From Octopus sinensis (taxonomy: Eukaryota), in NCBI RefSeq assembly GCF_006345805.1, contig NW_021836179.1, positions 1-64,000 of the forward strand: a stretch of 64,000 nucleotides of DNA. The letters run 5' to 3'. The translations under genes were made by a program, and so were the position numbers. Of this stretch, positions 2,238 through 37,644 are shown piece after piece (within the stretch, counting starts at the first letter, position 1; every line of letters starts with the position of its first letter). The notes beneath the pieces were generated by a model. That model did no database searches, was not told where the DNA came from, and worked only from the letters and a program-made list of their open reading frames with translations.

Positions 2238-3798
<1,561 letters not shown>

Positions 3799-4361: not shown

Positions 4362-4920
4362 TGTTTCTTATTACCACAAGGGGCTAAACACAGAGGGGAC
4401 AAACAAGGATAGACAAACGAATTTAAGTCGATTACATCGACCCCAATGCGTAACTGGTACTTAATTTATCGACCCCGAAAGGATGAAAGACAAAGTCGAC
4501 CTCGGCGGAATTTGAACTCACAACGTAACGGCAGACGAAATCCCCTATTCTTTATCACTCACAAGGGGCTAAACACACAGAGGGGACAAACAAGGACAAA
4601 AAAACGAATTTAAGTCGATTACATCGACCCCAATGCGTCGAACTGGTACTTAATTTATTTATCGACCCGAAAGGATGAAAGGCAAAGTCGACCTCGGCGG
4701 AATTTGAACTCACAACGTAACGGCAGACGAAATCCCCATTTCTTTATTACTTACAAGGGGCTAAACACAGAGGGGACAAACAAGGACAGACAAACTAATT
4801 TAAGTCGATTAAATCGACGCCAGTGCGTAACTGGTACTTATTTATCGACCCCGAAAGGATGATGAAAGACAAAGTCGACCTCGGCGGAATTTGAACTCAC
4901 AACGTAGCAGCAGACGAAAT
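4362..4920 (-). mobile_element. Three head-to-tail copies (about 185-190 bp) of a 5'-truncated Deu/Nin-domain-like SINE
   Basis: The reverse strand reads GAGTTCAAATTCCGCCGAGGTCGACTTTGCCTTTCATCCTTTCGGG..GATAAA..AAGTACCAG, resembling the Deu/Nin SINE core, three times. Confidence 0.7.
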
Positions 4921-5681: not shown

Positions 5682-5857
5682 TTCGCTCAACACTCATTTC
5701 CGCCCGCAAATTACTTGTGTCACTTTTCTGTGAGTCTACTTCCACCACAAAATCTCCGTATTTTTATATGTGGCTTACAAAAAAAAGTTTCGAAAGAAAT
5801 GTTAAAAATTAAGAAATAGGGGTGGGTGGGGATTTAAGAGTTTGAGAGTGAGATCTC

Positions 5858-6130
5858 TCTTTTACTTGTTTCAGTCATTTGACTGCGGCCATGCTGGAGT
5901 ACCGCCTTTAATCGAGCAACTCGACCCCGGGACTTATTCTTTTTTGTAAGCCCAGTACTTATTCTATCGGTCTCTTTTTGCCGAACCGCTAAGTAACGGG
6001 GACGTAAACACACCAGCATCGGTTGTCAAGCAATGCTAGGGAGACAAACACATACACACATATACATATATACGACGGGCTTCTTTCAGTTTCCGTCTAC
6101 CAAATCCACTCACAAGGCATTGGTCGGCCT
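5858..6130 (-). mobile_element. CORE-type SINE, 3' two-thirds
   Basis: Reverse complement of the family at 1781-2183. Confidence 0.85.
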
Positions 6131-6728: not shown

Positions 6729-6866
6729 ATTTCCGCCCGTCCAGCTGGGCCGAAGTGGTCATCTGTATTCTTCTACTGCCAGCTTCTAAAGGGCAGAGGA
6801 ATGCAGCCCCAGTCTGCTGCTACACTGGGCCAAAATATTTCAACTACCCAGCTACAGATTAACAGA
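6729..6866 (+). other. Putative 5'-UTR exon
   Basis: Acceptor TCATTCTCTTCAG|ATTTCC and donor AGA|GTAAGT, upstream of the terminal-exon acceptor at 7073/7074. Confidence 0.4.
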
Positions 6867-7353
6867 GTAAGTACATGACCTAAGAAACAAAGTACTAGTG
6901 TTGGTTTTTGCATCTAAACCCTGCCATACTGTATTCCAGCATGGCCACAGCCCAGTACCTGAAACAAGTAAAAGATAATATATATCTTTCACATAATCAT
7001 AATTAGAACCTGTACAATCTTCCACTCTGTAATCTCATTTTCTGTAATGTCTACTGTTTCTCTCTTATTTCAGATTACTGGATAACATTGGATTAAAGGA
7101 TTTATCATTTTTGAAAGATTAAACAAAGCTGTGACACAGAACAAAGAGATCCCTGTTTATAGAAAGAAGGTAAATTTTGTGTGAAATATTTCTTGCGACT
7201 GCAGCAATATTTCTTCTTCAATGAGGATTTTGCATTCCTATTAACCTTGGATTACAAAAGAGCTGGCAGCTTCTGCAGATATTGACCAAGATAAGAAATT
7301 TTATAGGAATGAAGTGTGTAAACATCTGCATATTGTGGTGAGAAAATATAATT

Positions 7354-8705
7354 ATGGAAAGTGAATTGCGTGAGGACAATGTGAAATGTAAAATGCTGAC
7401 GGAAAGTCTTGACTTTATTGAGGAGGTGCCAAAAGATAGAGGAAAAACATCTCACAACTGTGATATCTGTAAAAAGTCATTTACTCGGAAAGAAAGCCTC
7501 ACGATTCACAGACGTATTCATACAGGAGAGAAACCATACCACTGTGATATCTGTGGAAAATCATTCTCTCAAAGTCACCACTTAACTAAACACAAGCGTG
7601 TTCATACAGGGGAGAAACCATATCGCTGTGACATTTGTGGTCAGTCATTCTCTGTTGGAAGTACCCTGACTAAACACAAACACATTCACACTGGTGAGAA
7701 GCCATTTCATTGTGATGTGTGTGGTCACGCATTCTCTATACAAATAATTTAACAAAACACAAACACATTCATACAAGAGAGAGGCCTTATCAGTGTGATT
7801 TCTGCTGTAAATCATTCTCTAAAATTTCTATGTTAACTAAACACAAGCGAATTCATACTGGAGGGAAACCGTATCAGTGTGATTTCTGTGGAAAATCATT
7901 CTCTAAAAATTCTACCTTAACTAAACACAGGCGTATTCATACTCGAGAGAGACCTTATCGGTGTATTACCTGTGGTCAATCATTTTCCTCAGGAAGTTCC
8001 TTAACTAAGCACAAACGTGTTCACACTGGAGAGAAACCATTCCATTGTGATTTATGTGACAGGTCATTCTCTGGACGATTTTCCTTAACCACACACCGAC
8101 GCATTCATACAGGGGAGAGACCTTATCGGTGTGATATCTGTGGTAAATCATTCTGTCGAAATGACCACTTGACTGCACACAGGCGAATTCATACTGGAGA
8201 GAGACCGTATCAGTGTGATATCTGTGGCCAGTCTTTTTCTGTACGGAGTTCCTTAAATAAACACAAACGCACTCACACAGGGGAGAGGCCTTATCAATGT
8301 GCCATCTGTGGTCAGTTGTTCTCTGAAGGAAGTTCCTTAACTAAGCACAAGCGCATTCACACTGGGGAGAAACCATTTTGTTGTGACATCTGTGGACTCT
8401 CATTCTCTTCAGGATTTCTTTTGACTACACACAAACGCACTCACACGGGAGAGAAACCTTTTCGGTGTGACACGTGTGGTAAATCATTCTCTCGAAATCA
8501 ACACTTAACGAGACACAAACGAGTTCACACAGGTGAGAAGCCGATTCATTGTGATATCTGTGGCCAGTCATTTTCTGTTGGAAGTAGTTTAACTAACCAC
8601 AAACGAATCCATACGGGAGAGAGACCTTATCGGTGTGACACATGTGGGAAATCATTCTCTCGAAATGATTGCTTAAATGAACACAAACGCATTCATAAAA
8701 GATAA
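7354..8705 (+). pseudogene. C2H2 zinc-finger gene, 15 fingers if repaired; 1-nt deletion in finger 4 (about 7740)
   Basis: ORFs 7354-7752 and 7719-8705 join with 5 nt instead of 6 between the codons for F-S and N-N-L. It has a 33-aa MESEL... leader and no KRAB/BTB/ZAD domain. True pseudogene versus sequence error is unresolved. Confidence 0.8.
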
Positions 8706-9772
8706 AAAGCATTTCACTTTGGTAAATCATTCTCTGATAATGATTTTTGACTGAAACAAATGCATTCAAGGAGTGGAGGAACCGTATCACTGTGATATTT
8801 GTGGTAAATCATTCTCTCAAAAACACAATTACACTTAATTGCATTCAAACTGGAGAGGAATCATATCAGTGTGTTAATCTGTGGCCAGTTGTTCTTTGAT
8901 GGAAGTACATCAACTAAACACCTCGGCATTCATATAGAGAGGTTGATTCCATTCTTTATCATGGTCTTAAGAATGGAATCAACCTTTCTGTCTGTATATC
9001 TACCTTCTTTATAATGTTGGCAAACGAAATGGAGATAAGAATATGTATTGTCTGTTTGATGGAAGACTTCTATAAATGGCTGAAGATTGCTCAACATTTT
9101 AAAACTGATGTAATTACTCACAGTGTTTAATAAAATGAAGTAGCATGAAACGATTGTACCAAATTACCTAAGATATTCTTGTTGCTTATTTTGATTATAA
9201 TCACCCCATAGATTTATATGGATAATACCGTACAAAATTCTGGTGCCTCTGACTTAAGTACCATATTCATTTGAATCTAAATTTTGCTGAACCTATATAT
9301 ATATATATTGAAGGCTAGACCCTTCAATGCTGTGCTCCAGTATGGCCACAGTCCAGTACCTGAAACAAGTGAAAGATGAAAAAAATATCTTCCCATAGTC
9401 ATGAATATAACATGTAAAATCTTCCACTGTGTAGTCTCTGTTGTTTTATCAAGTATCCTCTGTAATTTCTGTTGTTTCTCTCTTATTTCAGATTACGGGA
9501 TAACATTGGATTAAAGGATTTATCATTATTGAAAGATTAAACAAAGCTGTGACACAGAACAAAGAGATCCCTGTTTATAGAAAGAAGGTAAATTTTGTGT
9601 GAAATATTTCTTGCGACTGCAGCAATATTTCTTCTTCAATGAGGATTTTGCATTCCTATTAACCTTGGATTACAAAAGAGCTGGCAGCTTCTGCAGATAT
9701 TGACCAAGATAAGAAATTTTATAGGAATGAAGTGTGTAAACATCTGCATATTGTGGTGAGAAAATATAAATT

Positions 9773-11065
9773 ATGGAAAGTGAATTGCGTGAGGACAATG
9801 TGAAATGTAAAATGCTGACGGAAAGTCTTGACTTTATTGAGGAGGTGCCAAAAGATAGAGGAAAAACATCTCACAACTGTGATATCTGTAAAAAGTCATT
9901 TACTCGGAGAGAAAGCCTCACGGTTCACAAACGTAGTCATACAGGAGAGAAACCATATCGCTGTGATATCTGTGGAAAATCATTCTCTCAAAGTTACCAC
10001 TTAACTAAACACAAGCGCATTCATACGGGAGTTAAACCATATCACTGTGATATCTGTGGTAAATCATTCTGTCAAAGCATTCATTTAACTAAACACAAGC
10101 GTATTCACACAGGGGAAAAACCATATCACTGTGATATCTGTGGTAAATCATTCTCTGTAAGTAGTGAGTTAACTAGACACAAACGAATCCATACAGGAGA
10201 GAAACCTTATCAATGTGATATCTGTGGTAAATCATTCTCTAAAAATTTTGTCTTAACTAATCACAAACGCATTCATACAGGAGAGAAACCGTACCAGTGT
10301 GGTATCTGTGGTCAATCATTTTCTGCAGGAGGTTCCTTACATAAGCACAAGCGCATTCATACAGGGGAGAAACCATATCGCTGTGATATCTGTGGGAAAT
10401 CATTCTCTCAAAATGATAAATTAACTAACCACAGGCGCGTTCATACAGGAGAGAAACCTTATGAGTGTGATATCTGTGGTAAATTATTCTCTCAAAATTC
10501 TGCCTTGACTGAACACAAACGCATTCATACAGGAGAGAAACCATATCAGTGTGAAATCTGTGGCCAGTCTTTCGCTGCAGGAGGGTCTTTACATAAGCAC
10601 AAACGCATTCACACAGGGGAGAAACCTTACCAATGTGATATCTGTGGTGAATCATTCTCCATAAATGATCAATTAACTAAACACAAACACATTCACACAG
10701 GAGAGGAGCCATTTCAGTGTGATGTATGTGGTCAGTCGTACTCTACTGCAGGTTCCTTGAGTACACACAAACGTATCCATACAGGTGAGAAGCCTTTTCG
10801 TTGTGATATCTGTGGTAAATCGTTCTGTCAAAATCAACAGGTAATTTCACATAAACGGGTTCACACAGGTGAGAGGCCCTACCACTGCGATATCTGTGGC
10901 CAGTCGTTTTCTGAAAGTAGTAGCTTAACTAAACACAAACGCATTCATACGGGAGAGAGACCTTATCGGTGTGACACCTGTGGTAAATCATTCTCTCGAA
11001 ACGATCACTTAAATAAACACAAATGCATTCATAGAAGAGAATCGTTGTCTGATAACCATTTCTGA
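9773..11065 (+). CDS. C2H2 zinc-finger protein, 14 fingers (430 aa)
   Basis: Intact ORF: 33-aa leader plus 14 CxxC-x12-HxxxH repeats with TGEKP-type linkers. Acceptor TTATTTCAG at 9491/9492. Confidence 0.92.
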
Positions 11066-11597
11066 ATGAAACACAAATCTTTTCAAACAGTGGAGGAAAC
11101 ATATCACTGATATCTGTTGTAAATTGTTTTCCCAAAACTCAACTTAATAATACAGGTGTGCATTCATACAGGTGAGAAACCATATCATTTTGATAACTTT
11201 GGTCAACTATTTAATCAAATGGCTAATTTGATTTAAAATAAAGATATTTATACAAGGAATGTTCTATACTTACGAGACATGGACCTGCATATCTGGATTC
11301 TGTTAATTTCATAACATTCCGTTACATTTTCTTTTATTGCCAGTCCATATGTTCTTGTTTCATTTTGGCTGCTATTTCTAGCGGGGCAAATTGTAAATAT
11401 TTCACTCTTTCTTTTGAATTTCCATTTTTTATTTAAATAAAAAAAAATCCCTTTTGTTTGCATCATTTGCGTTCTTAAATTCTTTTTCTTTCTTTTTTTT
11501 TAATAGCAATAAACGTCTTGACACAACAAAGAAGATTTCACAGGGTCTCTTATTAACTCTATACATGACTAAAAGCATAGCTACACTAATGCCTGTC

Positions 11598-11790
11598 TTT
11601 CCATGCTGGCATGGGTTGGACAGTTCAACCGGGGTCTGGGAAGCCAGAAGGCTGCACCGGGATTCATTTGATCTGGCAAAGTTTCTACGGCTGGATGCCC
11701 TTCCTTACGCCAACCACACCGTGAGTGTCGTGGGTGCTTTTTACGTGCCACCGGCACAGGTGCCAGACGAGGCTAGCATGATGATGATGA
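11598..11790 (-). mobile_element. RTE LINE 3'-end fragment
   Basis: TTTCCATGCTGGCATGGGTTGGACAG...GGATGCCCTTCC...GTGCCACCGGCAC matches the RTE 3' UTR. Confidence 0.75.
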
Positions 11791-11834
11791 TGATATATAT
11801 GTATATATGTTCATTTAAGAAACCTCATCATATA

Positions 11835-12213
11835 GGCGCAGGAGTGGCTGTGTGGTAAGTTGCTTGTTTACCAACCACATGGTTCCGGGTTCAGTCCCAC
11901 TGTGTTGCACCTTGGGCAAGTGTTCTACTATAGCCTCGGGCCGACCAAAGCCTTCTGAGTGGATTTGGTAGACGGAAACTGAAAAGAAGCCCGTCGTATA
12001 TATGTATATGTATATATGCATTTGTGTGTCTGTTTGTCCCCCCAACATCCGATGCTGGTGTGTTTACGTCCCCATTACTTAGCGGTTCGGCAAAAAGAGA
12101 CCGATAGAATAAGTACTGGGCTTACAAAAGAATAAGTCCCAGGGTCGAGTTGCTCGATTAAAGGTGGTGCTCCAGCATGGCCGCAGTCAAATGACTGAAA
12201 CAAGTAAAAGAGT
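11835..12213 (+). mobile_element. CORE-type SINE, full length
   Basis: GGCGCAGGAGTGGCTGTGTGGTAAG through TGACTGAAACAAGTAAAAGAG. Confidence 0.88.
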
Positions 12214-12341
12214 ATAACCATGTTGCCAGCTTTAAGACAATCCAATGTTTGGATGGTCCTTTTTACATACCACTGACACGGAGAGAGAGTCAGGCAGCAT
12301 GGTGCTTATTGCATGCCACCAGCAACATATATATGTATATA

Positions 12342-12710
12342 GGAGGCGCAATGGCCCAGTGGTTAGGGCAGCGGACTCGCGGTTTCGATTCCCAGACCGG
12401 GCGTTGTGAGTGTTTATTGAGCGAAAACACCTAAAAGCTCCACGAGGCTCTGGCAGGGGATGGTGGTGATCCCTTCTGTACTCTTTCGCCACAACTTTCT
12501 CTCTCACTCTTACTTCCTGTTTCTGTTGTACCTGTATTTCAAAGGGCCGGCCTTGTCACTCTCTGTGTCACGCTGAATATCCCCGAGAACTACGTTAAGG
12601 GTACACGTGTCTGTGGAGTGCTCAGCCACTTACACGTTAATTTCATGAGCAGGCAGTTCCGTTGATCGGATCAACCGGAACCCTCGTCGTCGTAACTGAC
12701 GGAGTGCTTC
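12342..12710 (+). mobile_element. Second tRNA-derived SINE family
   Basis: Head GGAGGCGCAATGGCCCAGTGGTTAGG (A-box) and GGTTTCGATTCC (B-box); an inverted relative lies at 13046-13345. Confidence 0.75.
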
Positions 12711-13045
12711 CTCTCTCTAATATATGTATATATCTATAGGTGTGTGTGTGTGTGTGCGTGTTACCCCTCCACAAAATATCCCAAATTTTATTTAATTTGT
12801 TTTGCGGGAAGGACTGTTTCAACGGAGTCGTGTCTTGGCCTTACCTTCAAAACGCGGATTAGACAAAACAGGGGCAACTGAAGAAGGGGAATATTCCTTG
12901 TGTTGTATGTCTTCTACTCTGTTTTTTTGTTGTTTGAAAAAAATCCGTTTACATGTTTTTGTTTCTCATTCTGTTCTACATTTTTTTTGTGTCCTGTACC
13001 CATATATGCATGTGTATATACATATAGATGTAGGTATGCACATAT

Positions 13046-13345
13046 CACCGTGACCTACCAGGCTATCGGATGTTGCTACACATCGCTGGTCACAATGCAT
13101 TTTGCATTGTTTTAGCCTTTAAATGACGCCACCCCGCTGGCTAAGCGAGCAGGCCAACAGAAGAAAGAGTGAGAGAAAGTTGTGGCGAAAGAGTAGAGCA
13201 GGGATCGCCACCACCCCCTGCCGGAGCCTCGTGGAGCTTTAGGTGTTTTCGCTCAATAAACACTCACAGCGCCCGGTCTGGGAATCGAAACCGCGATCCT
13301 ACGACCGCGCATCCGCTGCCCTAACCACTGGGCCATTGCGCCTCC
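13046..13345 (-). mobile_element. Second tRNA-derived SINE family, different 3' tail
   Basis: The reverse complement shares the first about 170 bp with 12342. A further copy of its tail lies at about 13828-13940. Confidence 0.75.
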
Positions 13346-13401
13346 ACAGGTATGCACATATATGTATGTATATATGCATATGTTGTATTTATTATATATA
13401 T

Positions 13402-13810
13402 ACTCTTTTACTTGTTTCAGTCATTTGACTGCGGCCATGCTGGAGCACCGCCTTTAGTCGAGCAAATCGACCCAGGGACTTATTCTTTGTAAGCCCAGTG
13501 CTTATTCTATCGGTCTCTTTTGCTGAACCGCTAAGTGATGGGGATGTAAACACACCAGCATCGGTTGTCAAGCAATGCTAGGGGGACAAACACAGACAAA
13601 CAAACATATACATGCACATACATATATATATATATATACGTATATACGACAGGCTTCTTTCAGTTTCCGTCTACCAAATCCACTCACAAGGCATTGGTCG
13701 GCCTGGGGCTATAGCAGAAGACACTTGCCCAAGATGCCACGCAGTGGGACTGAACCCGGAACCATGTGGTTGGTAAGCAAGCTACTTACCACACAGCCAC
13801 TCCTGTGCCT
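13402..13810 (-). mobile_element. CORE-type SINE, full length
   Basis: Reverse complement of the family consensus; nearly identical to 14798-15208, including the internal microsatellite. Confidence 0.88.
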
Positions 13811-14293
13811 CATATATATATATATCAATCACCGTGACCAACCAGGCTATCAGATGTTGCTACACATCACTGGTTACAATACGCTTCACGTTGTTTTAGC
13901 CTACAAATGATGCCACCTCGCTGGCTAAGCGAGCAGGCCAATATATATATATATTTATTGAAAAGACCCTTGTCCTCACGTCCTGCTTTTGTTGTTATCC
14001 TTACCATTATTGTTTTTACGTATTTTGGTATTTTTATTCGTGTAACATCGTCCTTTTTCCGTCCCTGTGTTGTATACATTCGAGGCTTTCTTCCAAGGAA
14101 TCTAATGCGCTTGGCTTAGATTTCCCTTGGGGGCTGCCCAGATCGGAGCAATCTCAAGATTAATCAGCCGAAATTGCGAAGATGATCCAGTTCTTGACTG
14201 ATGATTGAGGGCTTCGAATGTCCCGTCCGTGTTTTTTGTGTCGTCTTCTAAATGTTTCACGTTCTTGTCCCAGTTTGTATATTTTTTTACTTT

Positions 14294-14328
<35 letters not shown>

Positions 14329-14797
14329 TTGTTATGTTTTTTGATAACATGATAAGTTAGATAGAATGATGTATATATCATTCAACCATGGTGGTGGTTG
14401 AATATATTCTTAAGTCCACCATTCCGTCAATCACAGCAGCTTCCAGGCTTCACCACTAATTCAGTTCTCAACTAAATTGCCAACTGTGAACAGTCTTAGC
14501 ACCAGCTTATTTCACTCTTTCTCACAGAACCCTAGGGCTCTGGGGAACCCTGGTTGAGAAACGCTGACATAGGAGGATAAAAAAAACCCCAACATATTTC
14601 AAGGCCAGATGAAACGAATCAACCCACTGCCTTGTGTGTTCCAAAGTTCTCTGTTCTCTGTATCAGAAATGGCCTGGTTCTCTCTCAGCTACAATGGTGA
14701 GTGTTGCAGTTGATTCGATCAATGGAACAACCTGTTTGTGAAACTAACTGGCTGTTCCATTTATCGAATCAACAGCAACACTCTGTTTATTCTTTTT

Positions 14798-15208
14798 ACT
14801 CTTTTACTTGTTTCAGTCATTTTGACTGTGGCCATGCTGGAGCACCGCCTTTAAACAAGCAACTCGACCCCGGGACTTATTCTTTTTGTAAGCCCAGTAC
14901 TTATTCTATCGGTCTCTTTTGCCGAACCGCTAAGTAACAGGGACGTAAACACACCAGCATCGGTTGTCAAGCAATGCTAGGGGGACAAACACAGACAAAC
15001 AAACATATACACGCACATACATATATATATATATATACGTATATACGACAGGCTTCTTTCAGTTTCCGTCTACCAAATCCACTCACAAGGCATTGGTCGG
15101 CCCAGGGCTATAGCAGAAGGCACTTGCCCAAGATGCCACGCAGTGGGACTGAACCCGGAACCATGTGGTTGGTTAGCAAGCTACTTACCACACAGCCACT
15201 CCTGCGCC
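14798..15208 (-). mobile_element. CORE-type SINE, full length
   Basis: Reverse complement of the family consensus. Confidence 0.88.
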
Positions 15209-15745
15209 TTTGTAGTTTCAAAATGCCTTATTGTACGACTATGAGATGTATTATTATTGTCATGATTTTATCTTATTACAATCAACAACAAACACATTTC
15301 GTCAATATAAAAGTCTTTATTAGATTAAAAATAACATTATCAAAATACTTTGTTTTCTTCCAAACACGCCAGTAGGGAGCGAAAGAGCAAGGAACGCAGA
15401 GTGCTGACAAGAAAGAAAGGATAAAGATATCAGTGATATCTTCTGTAGGAATATATTTCTGTTCAATTAATTTAGCCTTTGATTCAATGATTTATCACAC
15501 CTGTCACAACATGGCTTCCCTGCAAGGTGAATCTGTTTATGTTTGGTTGAGGTACATCCTGTAGAGAATGGCTAACCACAGGTAAGATCTCTCACCTGTA
15601 AGTATACACCTGTGTCCAGTTAAGTGGTGATTTTAAGAGAATAAGTTACCACAAATATCACACTGATATGGTTTCTCTCCTCAATGAATGCACTTGTGTG
15701 TAGTTAACTGGTGTTTGTGAGAGAATGATTTATCACAAATATAAG

Positions 15746-15883
15746 GGTTGGCGTCAGGAAGGGCATCCAGCCGTAGAAGCATTGCCAGGTCAGACTGGGC
15801 CTGGTGCAGCTTTCTGGCTTCCCAGACCCCAGTTGAACCGTCCAACCCATGCTAGCATGGAAAGCGGACGATAACTGATGATG
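15746..15883 (+). mobile_element. RTE 3'-end fragment inserted in a decayed zinc finger
   Basis: GGTTGGCGTCAGGAAGGGCATCCAGC...CTGATGATG flanked by ATAAG on both sides (15741-15745, 15884-15888). Confidence 0.75.
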
Positions 15884-15929
15884 ATAAGTGATATGCTTTC
15901 TCTCCTGTTTGAATACCTTTGTGTTTGGT

Positions 15930-17075
15930 TCATCCATCATTATCAGAGAATGAATTATCATGGTGATATGCCTTCTCTCTTGTGGAAGTACATTTGTGCT
16001 TATTTAATTGATCATTTTGAGAGAATGACTGACCACAGGTGTCACACTGATAAGGCTCCTCTCCCGTATGAATACGTTTATGCTTAGCTAAGGTCCCTCC
16101 TACAGCGAATGACTGACCACAGATTTCACACTGATAGGGTTTCTCCCCAGTATGAATGCGCTTGTGTACAGTCAAATGTGTATTTTCAGAGAATGATTTA
16201 CCACAGATATCACACCGATAAGGTTTCTCTCCCGTATGAATACGTTTGTGTGTACTCAGGGTACTTGCTGTAGAGTACGACTGGCCACAGGTAACGCATA
16301 GATATGGTCTCTTTCCTGTATGAATGCGTTTGTGGTTATTTAAGACATTATTTTGAGAGAATGATTTACCACAGACATCACATTGAAATGGCTTCTCTCC
16401 CGTATGAATGCGTTTGTGTGTACTCAAGATACTTAACGTAGAGTATGACTGACCACAGATAACACACTGATAAGGTCTCTTTCCTGTATGAATGCGTTTG
16501 TGATTAGTTAAGACATGACTCTGAGAGAATGATTTACCACAGACATCACAGTGATATGGCCTCCCTCCTGTATGAATGCGTTTGTGCCTGGTCAAACTGC
16601 TTCCTTCAGAGAAGGACTGGCTGCAGACGTCACAACGAAATGGCTTCTCTCCTGTGTGAACGCGTTTATGTTTAGTTAGTGTACCAACTTCAGAGAACGA
16701 CTGACCACAGCAATCACACCGATAAGGTTTCTCTCCCGTATGAACGCGTTTGTGCTTAGTTAAGGTTCCTCCTTCAGAGAATGACTGACCACAGATATTG
16801 CAGCGGTACGGCCTCTCCCCAGTATGAATACGTTTGTGATTAGTTAACGCATATTTTTGATAGAATGATTTTCCACAGATATCACAGTGGTGGGGTTTCT
16901 CTCCTGTATGAATACGTTTGTGAGTAGCGAGGCTTTCTTTCCGAGCAAATGATTTTTTACAGATATCACAGTTGTGAGATGTTTTTCCTCTATCTTTTGG
17001 CACCTCCTCAATAAAGTCAAGACTTTCCGTCAGCATTTTACATTTCACATTGTCCTCACACAATTCACTTTCCAT
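15930..17075 (-). CDS. C2H2 zinc-finger protein, 11 intact plus 1 degenerate finger (381 aa)
   Basis: Intact ORF with the MESEL... leader. Acceptor at 17357/17356 and candidate donor CAG|GTAAGA at 18979/18978. Confidence 0.92.
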
Positions 17076-17442
17076 AATCTATATTTTCTCACCACAATAT
17101 GCAGATGTTTACACACTTCATTCCTATAAAATTTCTTATCTTGGTCAATATCTGCAGAAGCTGCCAGCTCTTTTGTAATCCAAGGTTAATAGGAATGCAA
17201 AATCCTCATTGAAGAAGAAATATTGCTGCAGTCGCAAGAAATATTTCACACAAAATTTACCTTCTTTCTATAAACAGGGATCTCTTTGTTCTGTGTCACA
17301 GCTCTGTTTAATCTTTCAAAAATGATAAATCCTTTAATCCAATGTTATCCCGTAATCTGAAATAAGAGAGAAACTGCAGAAATTAGAGGATACTTCATAA
17401 AACAACAGAGATTACACAGATTTTACATGTTATATTCATGAT

Positions 17443-18075: not shown

Positions 18076-18683
18076 GAGATATATATTTCTTTACTACCCA
18101 CAAGGGTCTAAACATAGAAGGGACAAACAAGGACAGACAAAGGGATTAAGTCGATTACATCGACCCCAGTGCGTAACTGGTACTTATTTAATTGACCTGA
18201 CATACATAACAGTCAAATACCTATCACCCCTCCACACCCTGACACAGAGATATACTTCTTTACTACCCACAAGGGGCTAAACACAGAGGGGACAAACAAG
18301 GACAGACAATGGGATTAAGTCGATTATATCGACCCCAGTGCGTAACTGGTACTTATTTAATCGACCTGACATACATAACAGTCAAATACCTATCACCCCT
18401 CCACCCCCTGACACAGAGATATACTTCTTTACTACCCACAAGGGGCTAAACACAGAGGGGACAAACAAGGACAGACAAAGGGATTAAGTCGATTATATCG
18501 ACCCCAGTGCGTAACTGGTACTTATTTAATCGACCTGACATACATAACAGTCAAATACCTATCACCCCTCCACACCCTGACACAGAGTTATACTTCTTTA
18601 CTACCCAAAAGGGGCTAAACACAGAGGGGACAAACAAGGACAGACAAAGGGATTAAGTCGATTATATCGACCCCAGTGCGTAA
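18076..18683. repeat. 169-bp tandem repeat (about 3.5 copies) built from a Deu/Nin-like SINE tail plus flank
   Basis: TTCTTTACTACCC recurs at about 18087, 18256, 18425 and 18594; the units are nearly identical. Confidence 0.9.
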
Positions 18684-19620: not shown

Positions 19621-20655
19621 GTAAGTGAAAAAATATATCTACATAGCATTTGTTGTACACTTGTTAACGGAGGTGTGTGATATCTAAGACAAGAAACTGA
19701 ACCATAGGAGGTTAGTCTATATCTACAGACATTTGTCAGCTTTTTAAGTATTCCTGAAGACAAGCAGGAAGACCTCCCTCACAACGGCTTTCCTTTTGGT
19801 AAACGATATTTCCCCTTTTGACACCCGATTTGTGTAATTTTCTTTTGAGTCCTTTAATCGTTAATAATGTATATTTTGCCAGTAAATTTAGGGCATAACT
19901 ACAGAAATGCGGGATCCTTTCGGTTTGGGGAGTTACCAAAATTGAAATTGCAAAAATGTTTATATCATTGTTCTGTGACCCTAACCACATCTTTTCAAGG
20001 AGTTCTCAAAAATGAAGCCCCCAAAAATCAAAATATTATTCCCCGCCTAACCTGAACTCATCATATATATATATATATAGATAGATAGATAGAGATATGT
20101 ATATATGTGCGTGCATGAGTAATGTTACACAATGTTAAAGAGTAGTTGTAGTTTACAAATTCTTACATTTCACCCAATGTTATATGATGTCATTTGTTAA
20201 TTAATAAAGAAATATTGTAACATTTCTCTTTTGATCTCTCCTCTCTATCTAATTCTGTTTCTTTATTATTTCAGATTTACGGATGACATTGGCATCAAAG
20301 AAATGTTCTTTTATAATGAATACAATTTCAACATTTTTCATCTTTTAAAGTCTTGAGGAAAAGTTTACACAGAACGCATCTAAGCCTATTTCTATAAATC
20401 TTAGGTAGAAATTCAATGAAATGTTTGCTCTGAACTGAGATTAATAGCAACATTTTTCTATTTCATTAGCTGATGCTTTGCATTCTCATTACTCTTTGAT
20501 GACTTTCTAAATTTATAGCATCTTTAGATATCAGTGAAGTTTGCAGTGGAAATGTTTGTAAGGAATAAACTATAAAAAGAAGGATAAAGATAGGAGTAAA
20601 AGTTTAATGTGGTGAGAAAGGCCAAGGATTGGATCTATTTTGATTCCTCAGAGAA

Positions 20656-22275
20656 ATGCTGAAAAATATGCGAAAATCATTGTATCATTATGATATCTTT
20701 GATAAATCAGCCTCAAGAAGTGATGACTTAGAAAGACACAAGCGTACTCACACAGGAGAAGAACCGCTTGACTGTGATATCTGTGGTAAATTATTCACTA
20801 CAAGCAGTACTCTAACTACACACAGACACATTCACACAGGTGATAAATTGTTTCCCTGTGATGTCTGTGGTAAATTATTCACTGCAAGTAGTGCCTTAAT
20901 TATACACAAATGTGTTCATACAGGAGATAAACCGTATCCCTGTGATATCTGTGGTAAATCATTCACTACAATTAGTAGTGTGACTAGACACAGACGTATT
21001 CACACAGGAGAGAAACCATTTCACTGTAATATCTGTGGTAAAACATTTTCTGACGGAAGTGCCTTAATTGTACACAAACGTGTTCATACAGGAGAGACAC
21101 CATTTCACTGTAATATCTGTGGTAAATCATTCTCTGACAGAAGTGCCTTCATTGTACACAAACGTGTTCATACAGGAGAGAAACCATATCATTGTTATAT
21201 TTGTGGTAAATCTTTCACTCAGAGCACTTGCTTAGCTAAACACCGATGTTTTTATACAAGAGAGAAGCTATTTCATTGTGATACATGTGGCAAATCATTC
21301 TCTAGGAGCAATAACCTAACTAGCCACAGACATATTCATACAGGAGAGAAGCCATTTCATTGTGATGTCTGTGGTAAATCATTCTCTACAAGTGGTAACC
21401 TGTCTACACACAAACGCATTCACACAGGCGAAAATCTATTTCCGTGTGATATCTGTGGTAAATCATTCCCTCAAAGCAATCACTTAACTAGACACATACG
21501 TATTCATACAGGTGAGAAACCATATGAGTGTGATGTCTGTGGGAAATCATTCTCTGAAAGAAGTACCTTAATTAGTCACAAACGTAATCACACAGGAGAT
21601 AAGCCATTTCCGTGTGATATCTGTGGTAAATCATTCCCTACAAACAGTCATTTAACTAAACACAGACGTATTCACACAGGAGAGAAACCATTTCAATGTG
21701 ATATCTGTGGTAAATCATTTTCTAGAAACTGTGCTTTAACTTCTCACAAACGTGTTCATACAGGAGAGAAACCATTTCAATGTGATATCTGTGGTAAATC
21801 ATTCTCTGAAAGTACTACATTAATGAAACACGGACGTATTCACACAGGAGAGAAGCCATTTCACTGTGATATCTGTGGTAAATCATTCTCTCAAAATTGT
21901 CATTTAACTTCTCACAAACGTATTCATACAGGTGAGAGGCCATTTTGCTGTGATTTCTGTGGTAAGTCATTCTCTGACAGAAGTGCATTAATTATACATA
22001 AACGTGTTCATACAGGAGAGAAACCATATCACTGTGATGTCTGCAGTAAATCATTCTCTGAAAGTGCTACATTAAATAAACACAGGTGTATTCATACAGG
22101 AGAGAAACCATTTCACTGTGATATCTGTGGTAAATCATTCTCTCAAAATTGTCATTTAACATCTCACAAACGTATTCATACAGGAGAGAGGCCTTTTTGC
22201 TGTGATTTCTGTGGTAAATCATTCTCTCAGAAACGTTACTTAACTGCACACGTATCTATCCATACAAGAATTTGA
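20656..22275 (+). CDS. C2H2 zinc-finger protein, 19 finger repeats (539 aa), unit 1
   Basis: Intact ORF. Finger 1 lacks both Cys and finger 7 lacks the last His. Acceptor at 20274/20275. Confidence 0.93.
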
Positions 22276-23330
22276 CTGTATTATTTATCAAATGTCTTTG
22301 CAGCACACAGCAACCGACATTTTAAAACCCTTTCTCCTTGTGGGCATTGTCAGTAACTGATGAACCCTTGGTAACATTCATAATCATCAGGGTTCCTTTT
22401 TGAGGTATTGTTTATGATGCCAACCCTTTTTGTAAGCACTTACCTGGGATACACATAGTTATGCTGGGCACAGGTATTTGTTAGAATTGTGTGTAGAAAA
22501 TAATTTGTATAACCATAAATATTGCCACTTTAGAAGCACTAGATTAGACAATTGTGAGGAGTGGAAACAGTGATGTGCAGATAAATATAGTTGTGTGTGT
22601 AGCAGAATGTAGCAGACACGAGAGGCCCCTTGATATTAAAGCTGAAATCTAAAAGAGGAGAAACGTGTGAGGCAGTGCAGCATCATGAGAGCAGATGGTG
22701 GAGAAATCCAGGTGAACATCTTTTAGAGTAACTGGGTTTTTAGCAAGACACAATTTCTTGCATACTGAAAATATATACTCCATGAAGAAGATTGTGAAAT
22801 CATGTGGAGGTGACGTGGTTAAATAAATATGTCTTCAACACTGAAACTTGCTGACTTGGTTTTTATATGTACCTAAATATGTATGTTTGATTGCTTCTCG
22901 TTTATTAATTGCATCCAAGGTCTTTGTTGATGCTGGGCTTTGATCTTTGTTTGCTTGTTATTTCAGCTTGCTTCTTATTCCTCTGTGTCAATTTGCTTCT
23001 GATGAAGCAATTAGATGAACAAAGCTGCTCTTCTTTGTGTTTCTCTAGGCTGTGGGTTCGTTTAGTATCTCAGATAAAAAGTTGAATACATCGTTAGAGC
23101 ACATCCAACCCTACGCTTAATAAATTGAATGGGAAAAGCAGGCTCTTCATCCAGCTCCCCTTATTCTCCTCACCATTCCCATCACAGCCTGCATCACCTC
23201 CTGAACCCCACCCGACTCTCACTTTGGGCAGCTTCTATTTTATAATTTTATGCATGCGTGAAACATTAATAGAAGAAAACACTTTCATTTCATTTCTTAT
23301 TATGGGTCAGGGGAGGAGGTGGGGTTTTTT

Positions 23331-26030
23331 GAATGGGAGGAGGAGAGCCTTCCAAATGTTGACCCAGTAGAGGGACCAGCTACCCGAATAGACAGCTCCC
23401 TTGTAGTTAAGGCAATTAAGGATATGAAACCAGGTAAAGCCCCCGGCCCATCCGGAATCACTGCTGAGATGCTTAAAACAGCTGGCTATGTGGGCTATGG
23501 CCTAGTCACCCGCATTGTAAACCAGGTAGTTCTGAATGGAGTCATACCCATTGACTGGCGTAGCAGCACCATAGTCAACTGCTACAAGGGTAAAGGTGAT
23601 GCTCTAGATAGAAATAACTACAGGGGTATTAAACTGTTGGATCAGGTGATGAAGGTCACAGAGAGGGTCATAACCCTTCTCATTAGGGAGAGAATTTGCT
23701 TAGATGAGATGCAGTTCGGTTTTGTGCCAGGTAGAAGCACCACTGATGCTATATTCCTGGTCCGACAACTGCAGGAGAAGTACCTAGCTAAAGATAAACC
23801 CCTCTACATAGCTTTTGTGGACTTGGAGAAAGCCTTTGACAGGGTTCCTCGATCCCTTATCTGGTGGTCGATGCGGAAACTGGAGATTGACGAATGGCTA
23901 ATAAGGGCTGTACAGGCTCTATACAGAGAGGCTGTCAGCAAGGCTAGGATTGGCAAAGAATATAGTGAAGAACTCCGGGTAGAAGTAGGTGTACACCAAG
24001 GCTCAGCCCTAAGTCCCCTTTTATTCATGATAGTCCTCCAGGCAATAACAGAGGAATTCAAAACAGAATGCCCCTGGGAGCTCCTCTAAGCTGATGACCT
24101 GGCCCTCATAGCAGAATCACTACCGGAACTAGAAAAGAAATTTCGAGTGTGGAAGCAAGGGTTAGAATCAAAGGGCCTTAGAGTAAATGTAGCAAAGACC
24201 AAAGTTATAGTAAGCAGAAAGGCGAACTCATCACACACTCCCTCGGGCAGGTGGCCCTGCTCGATCTGAAGGAAAGGTGTAAGTAGAAACTCCATAAGAT
24301 GCACCCAATGTAAGCTATGGACGCATAAGAGGTGCAGCAACATCAAAGGGAAACTAACTGATAAGATAGCTTTCATGTGCGGCAGATGCACAGGGACAGT
24401 AGACATCACAGACACTCAGAAAACAGATTCCATCACACTCCAGGGAGAGAAACGAGAAGTAGTTGATAGTTTCCGCTACCTGGGTGACCAAGTTAGTAGT
24501 GGGGGTGGATACTCAGAGAGTATCACCACTAGAATACGAATAGCCTGGGCAAAGTTCAGAGAGCTCCTACCCCTACTGGCGACAAAGGGTCTCTCACTCA
24601 GAGCGAAAGGTAGATTGTATGATGCATGTGTGCGAACTGCCATGCTTCACGGTAGTGAAACATGGGCTGTGACTGCAGGGGATATGCGTAGACTTGAAAG
24701 AAATGAAGCTAGCATGATCCGCTGGATGTGTAATGTCAGTGTGCATGCACGACAGAGTGTAAGCACCCTGAGAGAAATGTTGGACATAAGAAGCATCAGA
24801 TGTGGTGTGCAAGAGCGACGCTTGCGATGGTATGGTAATGTGCTGCGGATGGATGAGGAGAGATGTGTGAAGATGTTCCACTCCCAAACAGTTGAAGGTA
24901 ACAGGGGGAGAGGTAGACCCAGGAAGACATGGGATGAGGTAGTCAAGCATGACCTCAGAGCGCTGGGCCTCACTGAGGCAATGGCGAAGGACCGAGACCT
25001 CTGGAGATATGCTGTGACTGCAAAGACCCGGGCTGCTTCCTGCGCCAGTTCCGCATAGCCCCTGCTCATTGAACGTACACTGGATCCCAGAATGTCCCGC
25101 TATGCTTGAGGAGACCCGTTGAGTCAAGCACATGAACATGAACATTGAAATAAATATCAATGGAAATAGTAGTTGTGATACCTGTTCCGGTGGCACATAA
25201 AAAGCATCATCCAAACGTGGCCGTAGCCAGCACCGCCTCGACTGGCTTCTGTGCCGGTGGCACATAAAAAGCACCATCCAAATGTGGCCGTAGCCAGCAC
25301 CTCCTCGACTGGCTTTTGTGCCGGTGGCACATAAAATGCACCATCCGAACGTGGCCGTAGCCAGCACCGTCTCGACTGGCTTCTGTGCCGGTGGCACATA
25401 AAAAGCACCATCCGAATGTGGCCATAGCCAGCACCTCCTCGACTGGCTTTTGTGCCGGTGGCACATAAAATGCACCATCCGAACGTGGCCATAGCCTGCA
25501 CCGCCTCGACTGGCTTCTGTGCCGGTGGCACATAAAAAGCACCATCCCAACGTGGCCGATGCTAGCACTGCATTGACTGGCTTCTGTGCCGGTAGCACAT
25601 AAAAAGTACCATCAAAACGTGGCCGTAGCCAGCACCGCCTCGAGTGGTTTCTGTGCCGGTGGCACATAAAAACACCATCCCAACGTGGCCGTAGCCAGCG
25701 CCGCCTCGACTGGCTTCTGTGCCAGTGGCACATAAAAAGCACCATCCGAACGTGGCTGTTGCCAGCGCCGCCTTGGCTGGCTTCCGTGCCGGTGGCACGT
25801 TAAAAGCTCCAACTGATCGTGGCCAATGCCGGACCGCCCCCCTGGCACCTGTGCGGGTGGCATGTAAAAAGCACCCACTACACTTGCGGAGTGGTTGGCA
25901 TTAGGAAGGACATCCAGCTGTAGAAACTGTGCCAGATCAGACTGGAGCCGGGTGCAGCCCCTAGCTTCCCAGACCCCGGTCGAACCGTCCAACGATGATG
26001 ATGATGGTGATGATGATGATGATGATGATG
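23331..26030 (+). mobile_element. 5'-truncated, inactivated RTE-clade LINE (RT, 3' UTR and (GAT)n tail)
   Basis: RT motifs KAPGPSG, NYRGIKLL, QFGF, FVDLEKAFDRV, GVHQGS.LSPLLF, (Y>stop)ADD and FRYLG. Stops at 24087 and 24267. No APE domain. About 80-bp direct repeats at 23250-23330 and 26028-26108. Confidence 0.93.
25189..25830 (+). repeat. 67-bp minisatellite in the RTE 3' UTR (10 unit starts)
   Basis: GGTGGCACATAAAAAGCACCATCCGAACGTGGCC... starts at 25189, 25256, 25323 ... 25791. Confidence 0.95.
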
Positions 26031-27883: not shown

Positions 27884-28586
27884 CATTGTTCTGTGACCCT
27901 AACCACATCTTTTCAGGGAGTTCTCAAAAATGAAGCCCCCAAAAATCAAAATATTATTCCCTTCCAAACCTGATCTCATCATATATAAATTTATATATAT
28001 ATATGTGTATATAGATAGATATAGATATGTATATATGTGCGTGCATGAGTAATGTTACACAATGTTAAAGAGTAGTTGTAGTTTACAAATTTTTACATTT
28101 CACCCAATGTTATATGATGTCATTTGTTAATTAATAAAGAAATATTGTAACATTTCTCTTTTGATCTCTCCTCTCTATCTAAATACTGTTTCTTTATTAT
28201 TTCAGATTTACGGATGACAATGGCATCAAAGAAATTTTCTTTTATAATGAATACATCTTCAACATTTTTCATCTTTTAAAGTCTTGAGGAAAAGTTTACA
28301 CAGAACGCATCTAAGCCTATTTCTATAAATCTTAGGTAGAAATTCAATGAAATGTTTGCTCTGAACTGAGATTAATAGCAACATTTTTCTATTTCATTAG
28401 CTGATGCTTTGCATTCTCGTTACTCTTTGATGACTTTCTAAATTTATAGCATCTTTAGATATCAGTGAAGTTTGCAGTGGAAACATTTGTAAGGAATAAA
28501 CTATAAAAAGAAGGATAAAGATAGGAGTAAAAGTTTAATGTGGTGAGAAAGGCCAAGGATTGGGTCTATTTTGATTCCTCAAAGAA

Positions 28587-29867
28587 ATGCTGAAAAATTG
28601 TCGAAAATCATTGTATCGTTGTGATATCTGTGGTAAATCAACCACTAGAAGTGCTGCCTTAGATAGACACAAGCGTACTCACACAGGAGAGAAACCATAT
28701 CACTGTGATATTTGTGGTAAATCTTTCACTCAAAGCAATAACTTAACTATACACAAACTTGTTCATACAGGAGAGAAACCATATCACTGTGATATTTGTG
28801 GTAAATCATTCTCTCACAGAAGTGCCTTAACTAAACACAAACTTGTTCATACAGGAGAGAAGCCATTTCGCTGTGATATTTGTGGTAAATCCTTCACTAA
28901 AAGCAATGACTTAACTAAACACATACGTGTTCATACAGGAGAGAAGCAATTTCACTGTGATATCTGTGGTAAATCCTTCACTCAGAGTAATAGTTTAACT
29001 AGACACAGGCGTATTCACACAGGAGAAAAACCATTTCCCTGTGATGCCTGTGGTAAATCATTCTCTGACAAAAGTGCCTTAATTGTACATAAACGTGTTC
29101 ATACAGGGGAGAAACCATTTCGCTGTGATGTTTGTGGCAAATCATTCACTGCGAGTGGTGACTTAAATATACACAGACGTATTCACACAGGAGAGAATCC
29201 GTTTCACTGTAATATCTGTGGTAAATCATTCTCTCAAAGCAATCACTTAACTAATCACAAACTTGTTCATACAGGAGAGAAACCATACCACTGTGATATC
29301 TGTGGTAAATCATTCTCTCAAAATTGTCAATTAACTTATCACAAACGCATTCATACAGGAGAGAAACCATACCACTGTGATATCTGTGGTGAATCATTCT
29401 CTCAAAGCAATCACTTAACTAAACACAGACGTATTCACACAGGAGAGAAACCATTTCACTGTGATATCTGTGGTAAATCATTCTCTCAAAATTATCATTT
29501 AACTTCTCACAAACGGGTTCATACAGGAGAGAAACCATACCACTGTGATATCTGTGGTAAATCATTCTCTCAAAATTATCATTTAACTTCTCACAAACGG
29601 GTTCATACAGGAGAGAAACCATACCACTGTGATATCTGTGGTGAATCATTCTCTCAAAGTGATACTTTAAATAAACACAGGCGTATTCATACAGGAGAAA
29701 AGCCGTATCACTGTGATATCTGTGGTAAATCATTCTCACAAAATTGTCAATTAACTTCTCACAAACGTATTCATACAGGGGAAAAGCCATTTCACTGTGA
29801 TGTCTGTGGTAAATCATTCTCTCAAAATTGTCGTTTAACTTCTCACAAACATATTCATACAGGATAG
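28587..29867 (+). CDS. C2H2 zinc-finger protein type 1, 15 fingers (426 aa), unit 2
   Basis: Intact ORF ending HTG-TAG; fingers 11 and 12 are near-exact 84-bp duplicates. Confidence 0.93.
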
Positions 29868-32275: not shown

Positions 32276-32532
32276 CCCAAAAATCCAAGTTTTGTCTTTT
32301 TTCTCTTAGTGAAAATCATGCGGTTGTTAATATTGGAATTGAATGGGAAAAGCAGGCTCTTCATCCAGCTCCCCTTATTCTCCTCACCATTCCCATCACA
32401 GCCTGCACCCCACCCGACTCTCACTTTGGGCAGCTTCTATTTTATAATTTTATGCATGCGTGAAACATTAATAGAAGAAAACACTTTCATTTCATTTCTT
32501 ATTATGGGTCAGGGGAGGAGGTGGGGTTTTTT

Positions 32533-35041: not shown

Positions 35042-37644
35042 CACGCAGGAAACATTAATAGAAGAAAACACTTTCATTTCATATCTTGTTATGGGTCAGG
35101 GGAGGAGGTGGGGTTTTTGTTTTTATTTTGTATAGTTTGAAGAATTAAAATTTACAATTTTTTGGGTTTTTTTTTTGTTTTGTATATTTTGAAAAATTAG
35201 AATTTACAGTTTTTTTGATTTTTTTTTCAAAATCGTAATCTCCTTATTTTTCTACAAATTTCACCAGAAAAATTTTGTTTATAGTAGAAAATTTAAGAAA
35301 TTGCGTGGGAAGATTAAAAATTTTTTAATGCAGATTGTTTTTGCAGATTTGGAATCTCGAACTCGATATCGTGGGTTCCTGTAAAAACAAAACCCAAAAA
35401 ACATCGGAAAGAGGGTGCGGTCCATTGTCTTTCCCCACGCCGTAAACGGAACCCTTCCCCCTTTATTTCAGGATAAAGTAAAAAACGAAGGAAAGGGATA
35501 TGGGACTGAGATTTTGATGTTGGGGTTGTTGAAAAAATCTTTTCCAGAATCGAAATTTCCATGGCCTAAAAACATGGGATTCCGGAGAAAAAGAAAACAA
35601 AAAAGGAATTTGAAAACCGGGAAGGGCTCCGTTTCGATCTTCGCTATAGTTGAGGGTCGATGGTGGAAAAAGTTTGGCGACCCCTGATAAAGGCGTAGGG
35701 AACAGCACCTGCTGTGTTTCTAATCATATGTCCGTTTAATGAACAAACATACGGTTATATGCATTCTAAGGCTAAGATGTAATGATGTCAGAAATATTTG
35801 GCTGCTATTTTTAGCAGGTTCAGTGACCATGCGCAGACACTCTTGTTGAGACGTAATTACTATTTAGCTGGATGAGGTTTTTATCATTTACCTTGGCTGA
35901 GATGCAATTAAAGGTGTGAATTAATATAATTTTAACATCTCTTCGTGTTATATTGGGGACTTTTAATATATGACACCGGTGTCGTTCAACCGCGGGAATA
36001 ATTATCAACAGCTTCTACACGTGCTTCTAATTAAGACGAATCTAATTATATCAGATGTAGTAATACCTCGTGTTCAGGTGAACGTTGATCTCTATGAATA
36101 ACACGAAGCGACTTACATGATTTGTGATTTAATATTTCTCTTGATCACAGCTTTAGTTGGTTGATCCCTATTTTACAGGAAAGGGGGCAAAAAGCTTTGA
36201 ATCGAGGAACTTTGCTCGCCCTTCTTCATATTTCATTTGGACCTTAGATCGAAAGCACGAATTGTTTGTATGCCCCTTTGTAGCAAATATTGTGCGCATT
36301 TCTACTATCCATGGTGGGAAAAACAAACTGGATTTCAAGAAAGGATCCTGGTCAGATCAACAAGTATTCTAATGGTAAGTGAAAAAATATATCTACATAG
36401 CATTTGTTGTACACTTGTTAACGGAGGTGTGTGATATCTAAGACAAGAAACTGAACCATAGGAGGTTAGTCTATATCTACAGACATTTGTCAGCTTTTTA
36501 AGTATTCCTGAAGACAAGCAGGAAGACCTCCCTCACAACGGCTTTCCTTTTGGTAAACGATATTTCCCCTTTTGACACCCGATTTGTGTAATTTTCTTTT
36601 GAGTCCTTTAATCGTTTAATAATGTATATTTTGCCAGTAAATTTAGGGCATAACTACAGAAATGCGGGATCCTTTCGGTTTGGGGAGTTACCAAAATTGA
36701 AATTGCAAAAATGTTTATATCATTGTTCTGTGACCCTAACCGTATCTTGGTACTAGTCTTGGAGACTGGACCCGGTGCGCGCAGATGCGCATCCGCGCTT
36801 GCGAGTCGTAGGTTGTCGATTCTACAGCGACTTGCGTATGCAAATGAGCTGATTGGCGCAACACTGCAAAAACTAACTTAATAGCGAGCCCCTACTGGAG
36901 CTTAAGAAATATTTTTCAACGATATACAGTGTATATTATTCACATTGTTCTGTGACCCTAACCACATCTTTTCAGGGAGTTCTCAAAAATGAAGCCCCCA
37001 AAAATCAAAATATTATTCCCTTCCAAACCTGATCTCATCATATATAAATTTATATATATATATGTGTATATAGATAGATATAGATATGTATATATGTGCG
37101 TGCATGAGTAATGTTACACAATGTTAAAGAGTAGTTGTAGTTTACAAATTTTTACATTTCACCCAATGTTATATGATGTCATTTGTTAATTAATAAAGAA
37201 ATGTTGTAACATTTCTCTTTTGATCTCTCCTCTCTATCTAATTCTGTTTCTTTATTATTTCAGATTTACGGATGACAATGGCATCAAAGAAATGTTCTTT
37301 TATAATGAATACATCTTCAACATTTTTCATCTTTTAAAGTCTTGAGGAAAAGTTTACACAGAACGCATCTAAGCCTATTTCTATAAATCTTTGGTAGAAA
37401 TTCTATGAAATGTTTGCTCTGAACTGAGATTAATAGCAACATTTTTCTATTTCATTAGCTGATGCTTTGCATTCTCGTTACTCTTTGATGACTTTCTAAA
37501 TTTATAGCATCTTTAGATATCAGTGAAGTTTGCAGTGGAAACATTTGTAAGGAATAAACTATAAAAAGAAGGATAAAGATAGGAGTAAAAGTTTAATGTG
37601 GTGACAAAGGCCAAGGATTGGGTCTATTTTGATTCCTCAAAGAA

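Follow-up and report, generated by a model that had tools for sequence, protein, structure and literature searches.

The window analysed here, i.e., positions 1-64000 of Octopus sinensis contig VCDQ01005994.1 (64,000 nucleotides; assembly GCA_006345805.1, produced from PacBio and Hi-C data), contains two families of C2H2 poly-zinc-finger (ZNF) genes, and the three genes of family 1, denoted A, B and C, share a nearly identical segment of about 420 bp in the 5′ part of a predicted exon, embedded in homologous sequences that are far more diverged. Gene B (9773..11065, forward strand, ATG at 9773) is an open reading frame (ORF) for a protein of 430 amino acids with 14 C2H2 fingers, gene C (15930..17075, reverse strand, ATG at 17075) encodes 381 amino acids with 12 fingers, and the coding region of gene A (7354..8705, forward strand, ATG at 7354) encodes 15 fingers. 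The reading frame of gene A is split by a 1-bp deletion in an A-run within finger 4 (at about 7745), which yields an ORF at 7354-7752 with its stop at 7750-7752; the frame resumes at 7719 and continues to 8705. The finger that carries this lesion (7711-7793) spans 83 nt instead of 84, and all the fingers after it, 11 in number, are intact; the deletion either arose very recently or is an error of the long reads. The fingers of family 1 are tandem C-x2-C-x12-H-x3-H units with TGEKPY-type linkers, which identifies these genes as members of the C2H2 poly-zinc-finger class, and gene B matches the Pfam zf-C2H2 domain in 14 stretches (E = 6.5e-80). The Pfam scan detected fingers only, and no KRAB, SCAN or other effector domain. 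Family 2 consists of six forward-strand genes (ATGs at 20656, 28587, 37645, 44635, 51454 and 58284) which lie in tandem segmental duplications with units of 6.8-9 kb.

The segment shared by the family 1 genes (hereinafter the island) maps to 7056..7475 on the forward strand in gene A, 9474..9894 on the forward strand in gene B and, in inverted orientation, 16954..17374 on the reverse strand in gene C. It comprises an 18-nt polypyrimidine tract with its CAG, a leader (280 nt in A, 281 nt in the other two genes), the 35 N-terminal codons that precede the first Cys and the first 6 codons of finger 1. A blastn search of the window with 7074-7490 as the query yields three copies exactly, the other two being 9492-9908 (99.3% identity) and 17356-16939 (reverse strand, 98.6%), and all the remaining matches are zinc-finger matches of at most 52 nt. 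In a three-way MAFFT alignment numbered from the predicted exon start, the island extends from -18 to +402. Only 5 of its 421 columns are variable, all of these being singletons (+6, +37, +53, an indel at +277, and +296), such that the pairs of genes differ at 3, 4 and 4 of the 421 sites (a residual divergence of 0.7-1.0%), and the three copies are identical over the 223 nt from +54 to +276. In windows of 50 columns, identity is 96-100% from the exon start to about +400, compared to 16-84% upstream and 54-94% downstream, where the latter range leaves out windows that fall on a one-finger indel. None of 20000 permutations gave an identical run as long as the longest ones observed (224-240 nt; permuted longest runs, 94-161 nt), and the Fisher test of the island against either flank gives p values from 1.6e-6 to 2e-15. 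The claim of an earlier note on this DNA that three ZNF genes share an island of near identity is borne out by these figures, and the sliding-window identity check that the same note proposed reveals not a uniform divergence but a sharp contrast with both flanks. Two particulars of that note have to be amended: the identity starts not at the splice acceptor itself but at -18, inside the polypyrimidine tract, and the introns of A and B, said to differ at 1 in 6-7 bases, actually differ at about 1 in 4.6.

The leader is non-coding, as each of the three frames contains stops and an indel lies directly before the ATG. It carries two upstream ATGs that are common to A, B and C, and the candidate of an overlapping antisense gene was rejected given that no antisense ORF starting at an ATG is present in the block. 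The predicted acceptor, GTTTCTCTCTTATTTCAG|ATTAC, is common to the three genes, with a CT(N)TAAT motif approximately 25-30 nt upstream. A consensus donor (ACAGA|GTAAGT) at 6860-6872, located 208 nt upstream of the gene A acceptor and beyond the region homologous to gene B, could mark an upstream exon of gene A. Within the leader, there is a donor-like 5′ splice site at 7166-7172 (AAGGTAAAT), kept in both families as GGTAAA and GGTAGA (near 28331 in family 2), and a possible acceptor downstream, at 7295-7306 (TTTTATAGGAAT; near 28460 in family 2); judging from these sites, the leader may include a small intron or be subject to alternative splicing.

On the 5′ side of the island, the intron segment of gene A (6914..7055, forward strand) is homologous to that of gene B (9315..9473, forward strand), from which it differs at 21.5% of the positions along with indels, and the last ~80 nt of the gene B segment are homologous also to 17375-17441 upstream of gene C. 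From -160 to -19, the differences amount to 31/144 for A-B, 57/130 for A-C and 52/144 for B-C; A and B can be aligned over some 160 nt with an indel of 14-16 nt and B and C over some 80 nt, beyond which the homology ends. In the 20 nt directly upstream of the island, the difference amounts to about 40%, and indels of 14-16 nt and 6 nt come next. Downstream, from +403 to +553 (7476..7626 on the forward strand in gene A; the rest of finger 1 and finger 2), the differences are 14/151 for A-B (9%), 24/151 for A-C (16%) and 31/151 for B-C (21%). For every pair of genes, the upstream differences cease at -18 to -20, so that the island has one common 5′ edge. At its 3′ end, the transition is gradual and depends on the pair: gene C departs at +403, and A and B remain about 91% identical through finger 2. 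Upstream of the island, most of the variable sites group B with C against A, and downstream, A with B against C, unlike the star-like pattern of the island itself, where there are only singletons, although with three sequences and no outgroup this is a weak test.

The synonymous divergence (dS) increases stepwise along the coding sequence: the N-terminus has 0 (0 synonymous differences at ~19 synonymous sites of the 35 codons), finger 1 has 0.06-0.28, finger 2 has 0.25-0.97, and the later fingers, compared with their best matches, have 0.4-0.6. The nonsynonymous divergence (dN) is close to 0.1 throughout. Positional orthology among the family 1 genes is limited to fingers 1-2 and the last one or two fingers, the interior of the arrays being reshuffled. 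In the matchable A-B finger pairs, dN/dS is about 1.2 for the helix positions and about 0.15 for the scaffold positions. The fingers are old or mosaic and have not been merely pushed apart by selection on amino acids; given the high dS, the contrast between the island and the fingers reflects genealogical depth rather than accelerated protein evolution. A recent duplication followed by accelerated protein evolution was rejected for the same reason, as finger dS is high and dN/dS is about 0.2.

Family 2 provides an internal control for the evolution of the leader. The leader of the first gene of this family (20275..20655, forward strand, 381 nt) is homologous to the family 1 leader and has the same acceptor; the other copies, all on the forward strand, lie at 28206-28586, 37264-37644, 44254-44634, 51074-51453 and 57903-58283. 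All six genes start at a like acceptor, ttatttcag|ATTTACGGATGACA, and their leaders are collinear with the family 1 leader. A profile built from the nine leaders matches only these nine in the window, and in the same scan no homologue of the leader was detected for the ZNF gene at 2309-3648 on the reverse strand. An origin of the leader as a mobile element or by recent insertion was rejected on the grounds that the window contains only three copies of the family 1 leader and that the homologous family 2 leader occupies the same place. Between the two families, the leader is 59% identical (229/388 aligned positions) with 106 gap columns. The conserved blocks are the polypyrimidine tract (15/18), ACACAGAAC, TTTGCATTC and AGATAT, whereas the intron is unalignable; the 18-nt acceptor tract is invariant in all six copies of family 2. 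Within family 2, the mean pairwise difference is 2.2% in the leader, 3.4% in the adjacent intron, 0.4% far upstream, 1.1% in the 3′ flank and 16% in the array interior. The leader of family 2 evolves at about the neutral rate, and it has changed more among these young duplicates than among the old genes of family 1. As the leader diverges approximately as fast as the intron, it is not intrinsically invariant. The family 2 unit is nearly identical overall; divergence and reshuffling are restricted to the array interior, where the fingers have their closest counterparts (92-95%) in non-collinear positions.

The ATG of the family 1 genes and the first 24 codons (7354-7425) align with non-coding leader sequence of family 2 (28490-28586), where ATA takes the place of the ATG, and the family 2 ATG aligns with codon 25 (GTG) of family 1. 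The start codon has therefore moved between the families, and accordingly the N-terminal peptide of family 1 has been under little long-term constraint. A phmmer search with the 35-residue N-terminus against 1.84 billion representative proteins gave no credible relative, the single match being to a repetitive, unrelated protein (6 repeats with a summed E of 5.5e-6) and judged a chance one, and a 43-residue N-terminus gave no candidate in a set of 5.8 billion proteins. The search with the complete gene B protein retrieved only generic vertebrate ZNF proteins, with no cephalopod relatives among the matches listed. In an exact cluster look-up, none of six proteins of the window is present in the collection; in other exact look-ups, B and C match their own contig only, and the gene A fragment and one family 2 protein are without a record. 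Metagenome contigs contain no match to an invariant 41-nt stretch of the leader.

Based on these observations, the family 1 island appears to be best explained by recurrent interlocus gene conversion that was limited to the 5′ portion of the exon, with a probability of roughly 0.7. Four features are those expected of a conversion tract. The segment of higher identity is internal to, and bounded by, more diverged homology of an older age; coding, synonymous and non-coding sites, i.e., neutral and constrained ones, are homogenised alike; the relationships among the genes differ between the tract and the flanks, a weak argument for three sequences without an outgroup; and the identity exceeds the intrinsic constraint, as judged by the comparison with family 2. 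Of the two explanations offered in the earlier note, focal gene conversion and strong constraint on an RNA element, the former agrees with the patch structure and the incongruent flanks. The architecture of a constant leader and a variable array that the note proposed is a fair description of family 1; it does not extend to family 2, where the whole unit is nearly identical and the leader is not special.

Under the gene conversion scenario, A, B and C would be old paralogues with a neutral divergence of ~0.25 or more (as estimated from the intron and from the finger dS of 0.4-0.6). Recent non-reciprocal transfer among A, B and the inverted gene C would have homogenised the 5′ part of their single large exon, from the polypyrimidine tract and acceptor through the leader and the N-terminal codons into the beginning of finger 1. 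The process was probably recurrent, with tracts that were anchored at a common 5′ limit and ended variably in fingers 1-2, which would give a sharp common 5′ edge and a graded, pair-specific 3′ edge; the stepwise rise of dS across these two fingers likewise suggests several tracts of different length. The fingers further downstream would stay different, having been shuffled, gained and lost, with the helix positions changing at about the neutral rate or faster. For the 5′ limit, three candidates may be considered: a heterology barrier, in which the ~40% difference and the indels upstream of the island would block the extension of the heteroduplex, giving an edge that, once established, reinforces itself; a fixed initiation site with a polarity gradient; or a limit at the exon start that would be set by an RNA template or by selection.

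Several considerations, however, weigh against this scenario. The 5′ edges fall within ~2-3 nt of each other in all pairs, whereas the ends of random independent tracts would differ, so that an extra assumption, a barrier, a hotspot or selection, is needed. The leader is under some constraint, as seen in ACACAGAAC, TTTGCATTC and the polypyrimidine tract, and selection may help retain converted tracts. Furthermore, there are three sequences only, from which the donor is not identifiable, and a single event of template switching or partial duplication would leave a similar pattern.

The last of these points leads to the alternative that one or two structural events, such as a partial duplication with template switching or an unequal exchange followed by a second exchange, placed a copy of the 5′ exon segment of one gene before different arrays that already existed. 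With its star-like pattern and its equally few differences (3, 4 and 4), the island is compatible with a near-simultaneous origin of the three copies; events of one kind would more easily produce the same 5′ breakpoint in all of them; and family 2 demonstrates that segmental duplication has occurred in this cluster at a comparable divergence of 0.4-3.4%. Nevertheless, the intron and the fingers around the island are still homologous, collinear and anciently diverged, so that the replacement must have occurred in place, which amounts to gene conversion, and the pair-specific, stepwise dS in fingers 1-2 suggests more than one tract length. We therefore regard structural events as an unlikely origin of the island.

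Strong purifying selection on an element in the leader, be it an RNA structure, translational control by two upstream ORFs or a target of a small RNA or protein, could in principle keep 420 bp unchanged. The identity begins at the polypyrimidine tract and covers exactly the 5′ part of the predicted exon, short blocks of the leader and the acceptor are kept between the families while the intron is not alignable, and the upstream ATGs are common to the three genes. However, the synonymous sites of the N-terminus are frozen as well, the first 24 codons of family 1 align with non-coding sequence of family 2, and the leader of family 2, with its 59% identity and many indels between the families and a rate within family 2 comparable to that of the intron, does not behave as a strongly constrained element. 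In quantitative terms, a ratio of rates of 30-80 fold would be required, and family 2 shows one of about 1.5 fold. Some selection on the acceptor and on the short leader motifs is likely but cannot explain the 30-80-fold rate difference. Nor is there support from thermodynamics, covariation or Rfam: the 404-nt block is no more stable when folded than its shuffled versions (z = +0.51), the consensus structure computed from seven leaders is negligible, at -4.19 kcal/mol over 381 columns with short AU-rich helices only, and no Rfam family matches anywhere in the window at the gathering score. The leader thus does not qualify as a structured cis-regulatory RNA element, and the folding check proposed in the earlier note, together with the rate of the family 2 leader, speaks against the RNA-element constraint that the note put forward. 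On balance, there is little to recommend purifying selection as the cause of the island.

An equally doubtful proposal is that the leader acts at the RNA level and that the exon for this reason sets the bounds of the identity, either because the ZNF exons are alternative 3′ cassettes that are joined to common upstream exons and all need one acceptor and leader module for splicing or translational control, or because spliced RNA is the template of the homogenisation. In both families, the ZNF exons, nine in total, share the same strong predicted acceptor and a long, AUG-containing non-coding leader, a layout that is compatible with an organisation of either kind.

In its specific form, the RNA-templated (cDNA-mediated) version of conversion, with a spliced transcript as the repair template and the 18-nt tract maintained by selection on the splice site, seems very improbable. 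The block of recent coalescence may begin anywhere between -18 and +6, the tract from -18 to -1 is kept between the families (15/18) and invariant in family 2, and a boundary at the exon start would explain the coincidence of the three edges. Yet the acceptor is a predicted one, and a heterology barrier gives the same edge with no recourse to a rare mechanism. Finally, an artefact of assembly or polishing that made the three leaders alike is hardly credible: PacBio reads underlie the assembly, and gene A has a 1-bp deletion that may be a sequencing error, but each copy keeps private differences, the three copies lie within 10.3 kb and are surrounded by unique sequence that is diverged, a repeat of 420 bp is unlikely to collapse given the much greater length of long reads, and polishing would not be expected to erase ~20% divergence over 420 bp and to stop at the same base three times.

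Concerted evolution by interlocus gene conversion is known from classical cases such as the duplicated gamma- and alpha-globin genes of primates and the arms of Y-chromosome palindromes. The octopus genes resemble these in that a patch of near identity lies within an older duplication, coding, synonymous and non-coding sites are homogenised alike, and the copies are a few kb apart in both direct and inverted orientation; a tract of a few hundred bp is typical. Unlike the globin and palindrome cases, the octopus copies have a common 5′ edge, within 2-3 nt, at a predicted exon start, and the tract consists mainly of an untranslated leader and stops upon entering a coding minisatellite of 84-bp finger repeats. 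A constant 5′ segment combined with a hypervariable functional part is also characteristic of paralogous conotoxin precursors and snake phospholipase A2 (PLA2) genes. The constant 5′ segment and variable body of family 1 are similar by analogy only: in the variable part of conotoxins and PLA2, dN exceeds dS and dS is low, whereas the dS of the octopus fingers is high (0.4-0.6), and the contrast in the octopus genes therefore comes from mosaic ancestry and not from accelerated protein evolution.

In vertebrate clusters of poly-zinc-finger genes, fingers are gained and lost, the residues that contact DNA are under positive selection, and conversion has occasionally been detected with GENECONV (PMC2604467). 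The octopus genes share with clusters of the KRAB-ZNF type the tandem C2H2 arrays in which the end fingers are positionally orthologous and the interior is reshuffled, as well as the high dN/dS of the helix positions (about 1.2) relative to the scaffold positions (about 0.15), but differ in that the part outside the fingers is an orphan peptide of 35 residues with no effector domain, and the conserved module of family 1 is a non-coding leader rather than an effector exon. For the protocadherin clusters of cephalopods, lineage-specific duplication with homogenisation by gene conversion has been proposed (PMC9068888). The ZNF genes analysed here come from the same group of animals and show a large tandem expansion to which the same homogenising process is ascribed; unlike the protocadherins, for which whole genes form species-specific clades, they resolve a sub-genic tract. 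In the literature on the C2H2 expansion of cephalopods that was searched, the exon structure, leaders and conversion in these genes are not described. The island is a new, well-resolved example of a known process rather than a new mechanism. It represents clean sub-genic concerted evolution inside the large octopus C2H2 expansion, with a resolved 5′ limit where the exon is predicted to begin and a gradient, resembling polarity, that runs into the finger array. Trees of the paralogues built from different parts of the genes will disagree, which matters for the dating of cephalopod ZNF expansions and for tests of positive selection. An architecture with an acceptor, a leader of 280-380 nt, a short or absent N-terminus and fingers is common to at least two families.

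The genes of family 2 show several additional features. Across 19239-64000, the duplications retain 95-100% identity in introns, leaders and flanks and drop to 70-85% only inside the finger arrays; two of the copies, 44752-45927 and 51571-52746, have 14 identical fingers. In five of the six genes, an in-frame TAG is present in the linker before the last finger (29865-29867, 38839-38841, 45913-45915, 52732-52734 and 59981-59983), such that these genes end one finger early with the last finger intact downstream; the sixth has GAG (22186-22188). This TAG is an inherited nonsense change. Given the heavy A-to-I editing in this animal, UAG could in principle be read as UGG. The gene with the ATG at 58284 contains a finger spacing of 83 nt (58737-58820) that shifts the frame, its ORF ending at 58862, and in the gene with the ATG at 51454 a Cys of the first finger (51487-51570) is replaced by Tyr.

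Several repetitive sequences occur in the window, and a scan for sigma-70 promoters and terminators, irrelevant for a eukaryote, returned background counts only. An interspersed repeat of ~420-450 bp, with copies that are 86-94% identical (1766-2206, 5857-6129 on the reverse strand, 11830-12216, 13378-13825 on the reverse strand and 14786-15209), is scattered between the family 1 genes and, with its tRNA-like GGTTCAGTCCCACTGCG motif, is probably a short interspersed nuclear element. Related tandem repeats at 4368-4920 and 18077-18683, with units of 187 bp and 169 bp in 2.9 and 3.6 copies, respectively, sit upstream of the ZNF gene at 2309-3648 (reverse strand) and of gene C. Inside the longer units of family 2, ORFs with matches to RVT_1 at 23319-24089 (E = 4e-20) and 32521-33474 (E = 2.5e-28) are fragments of retroelements, and a 67-bp tandem repeat (25182-25875) adjoins one of them.

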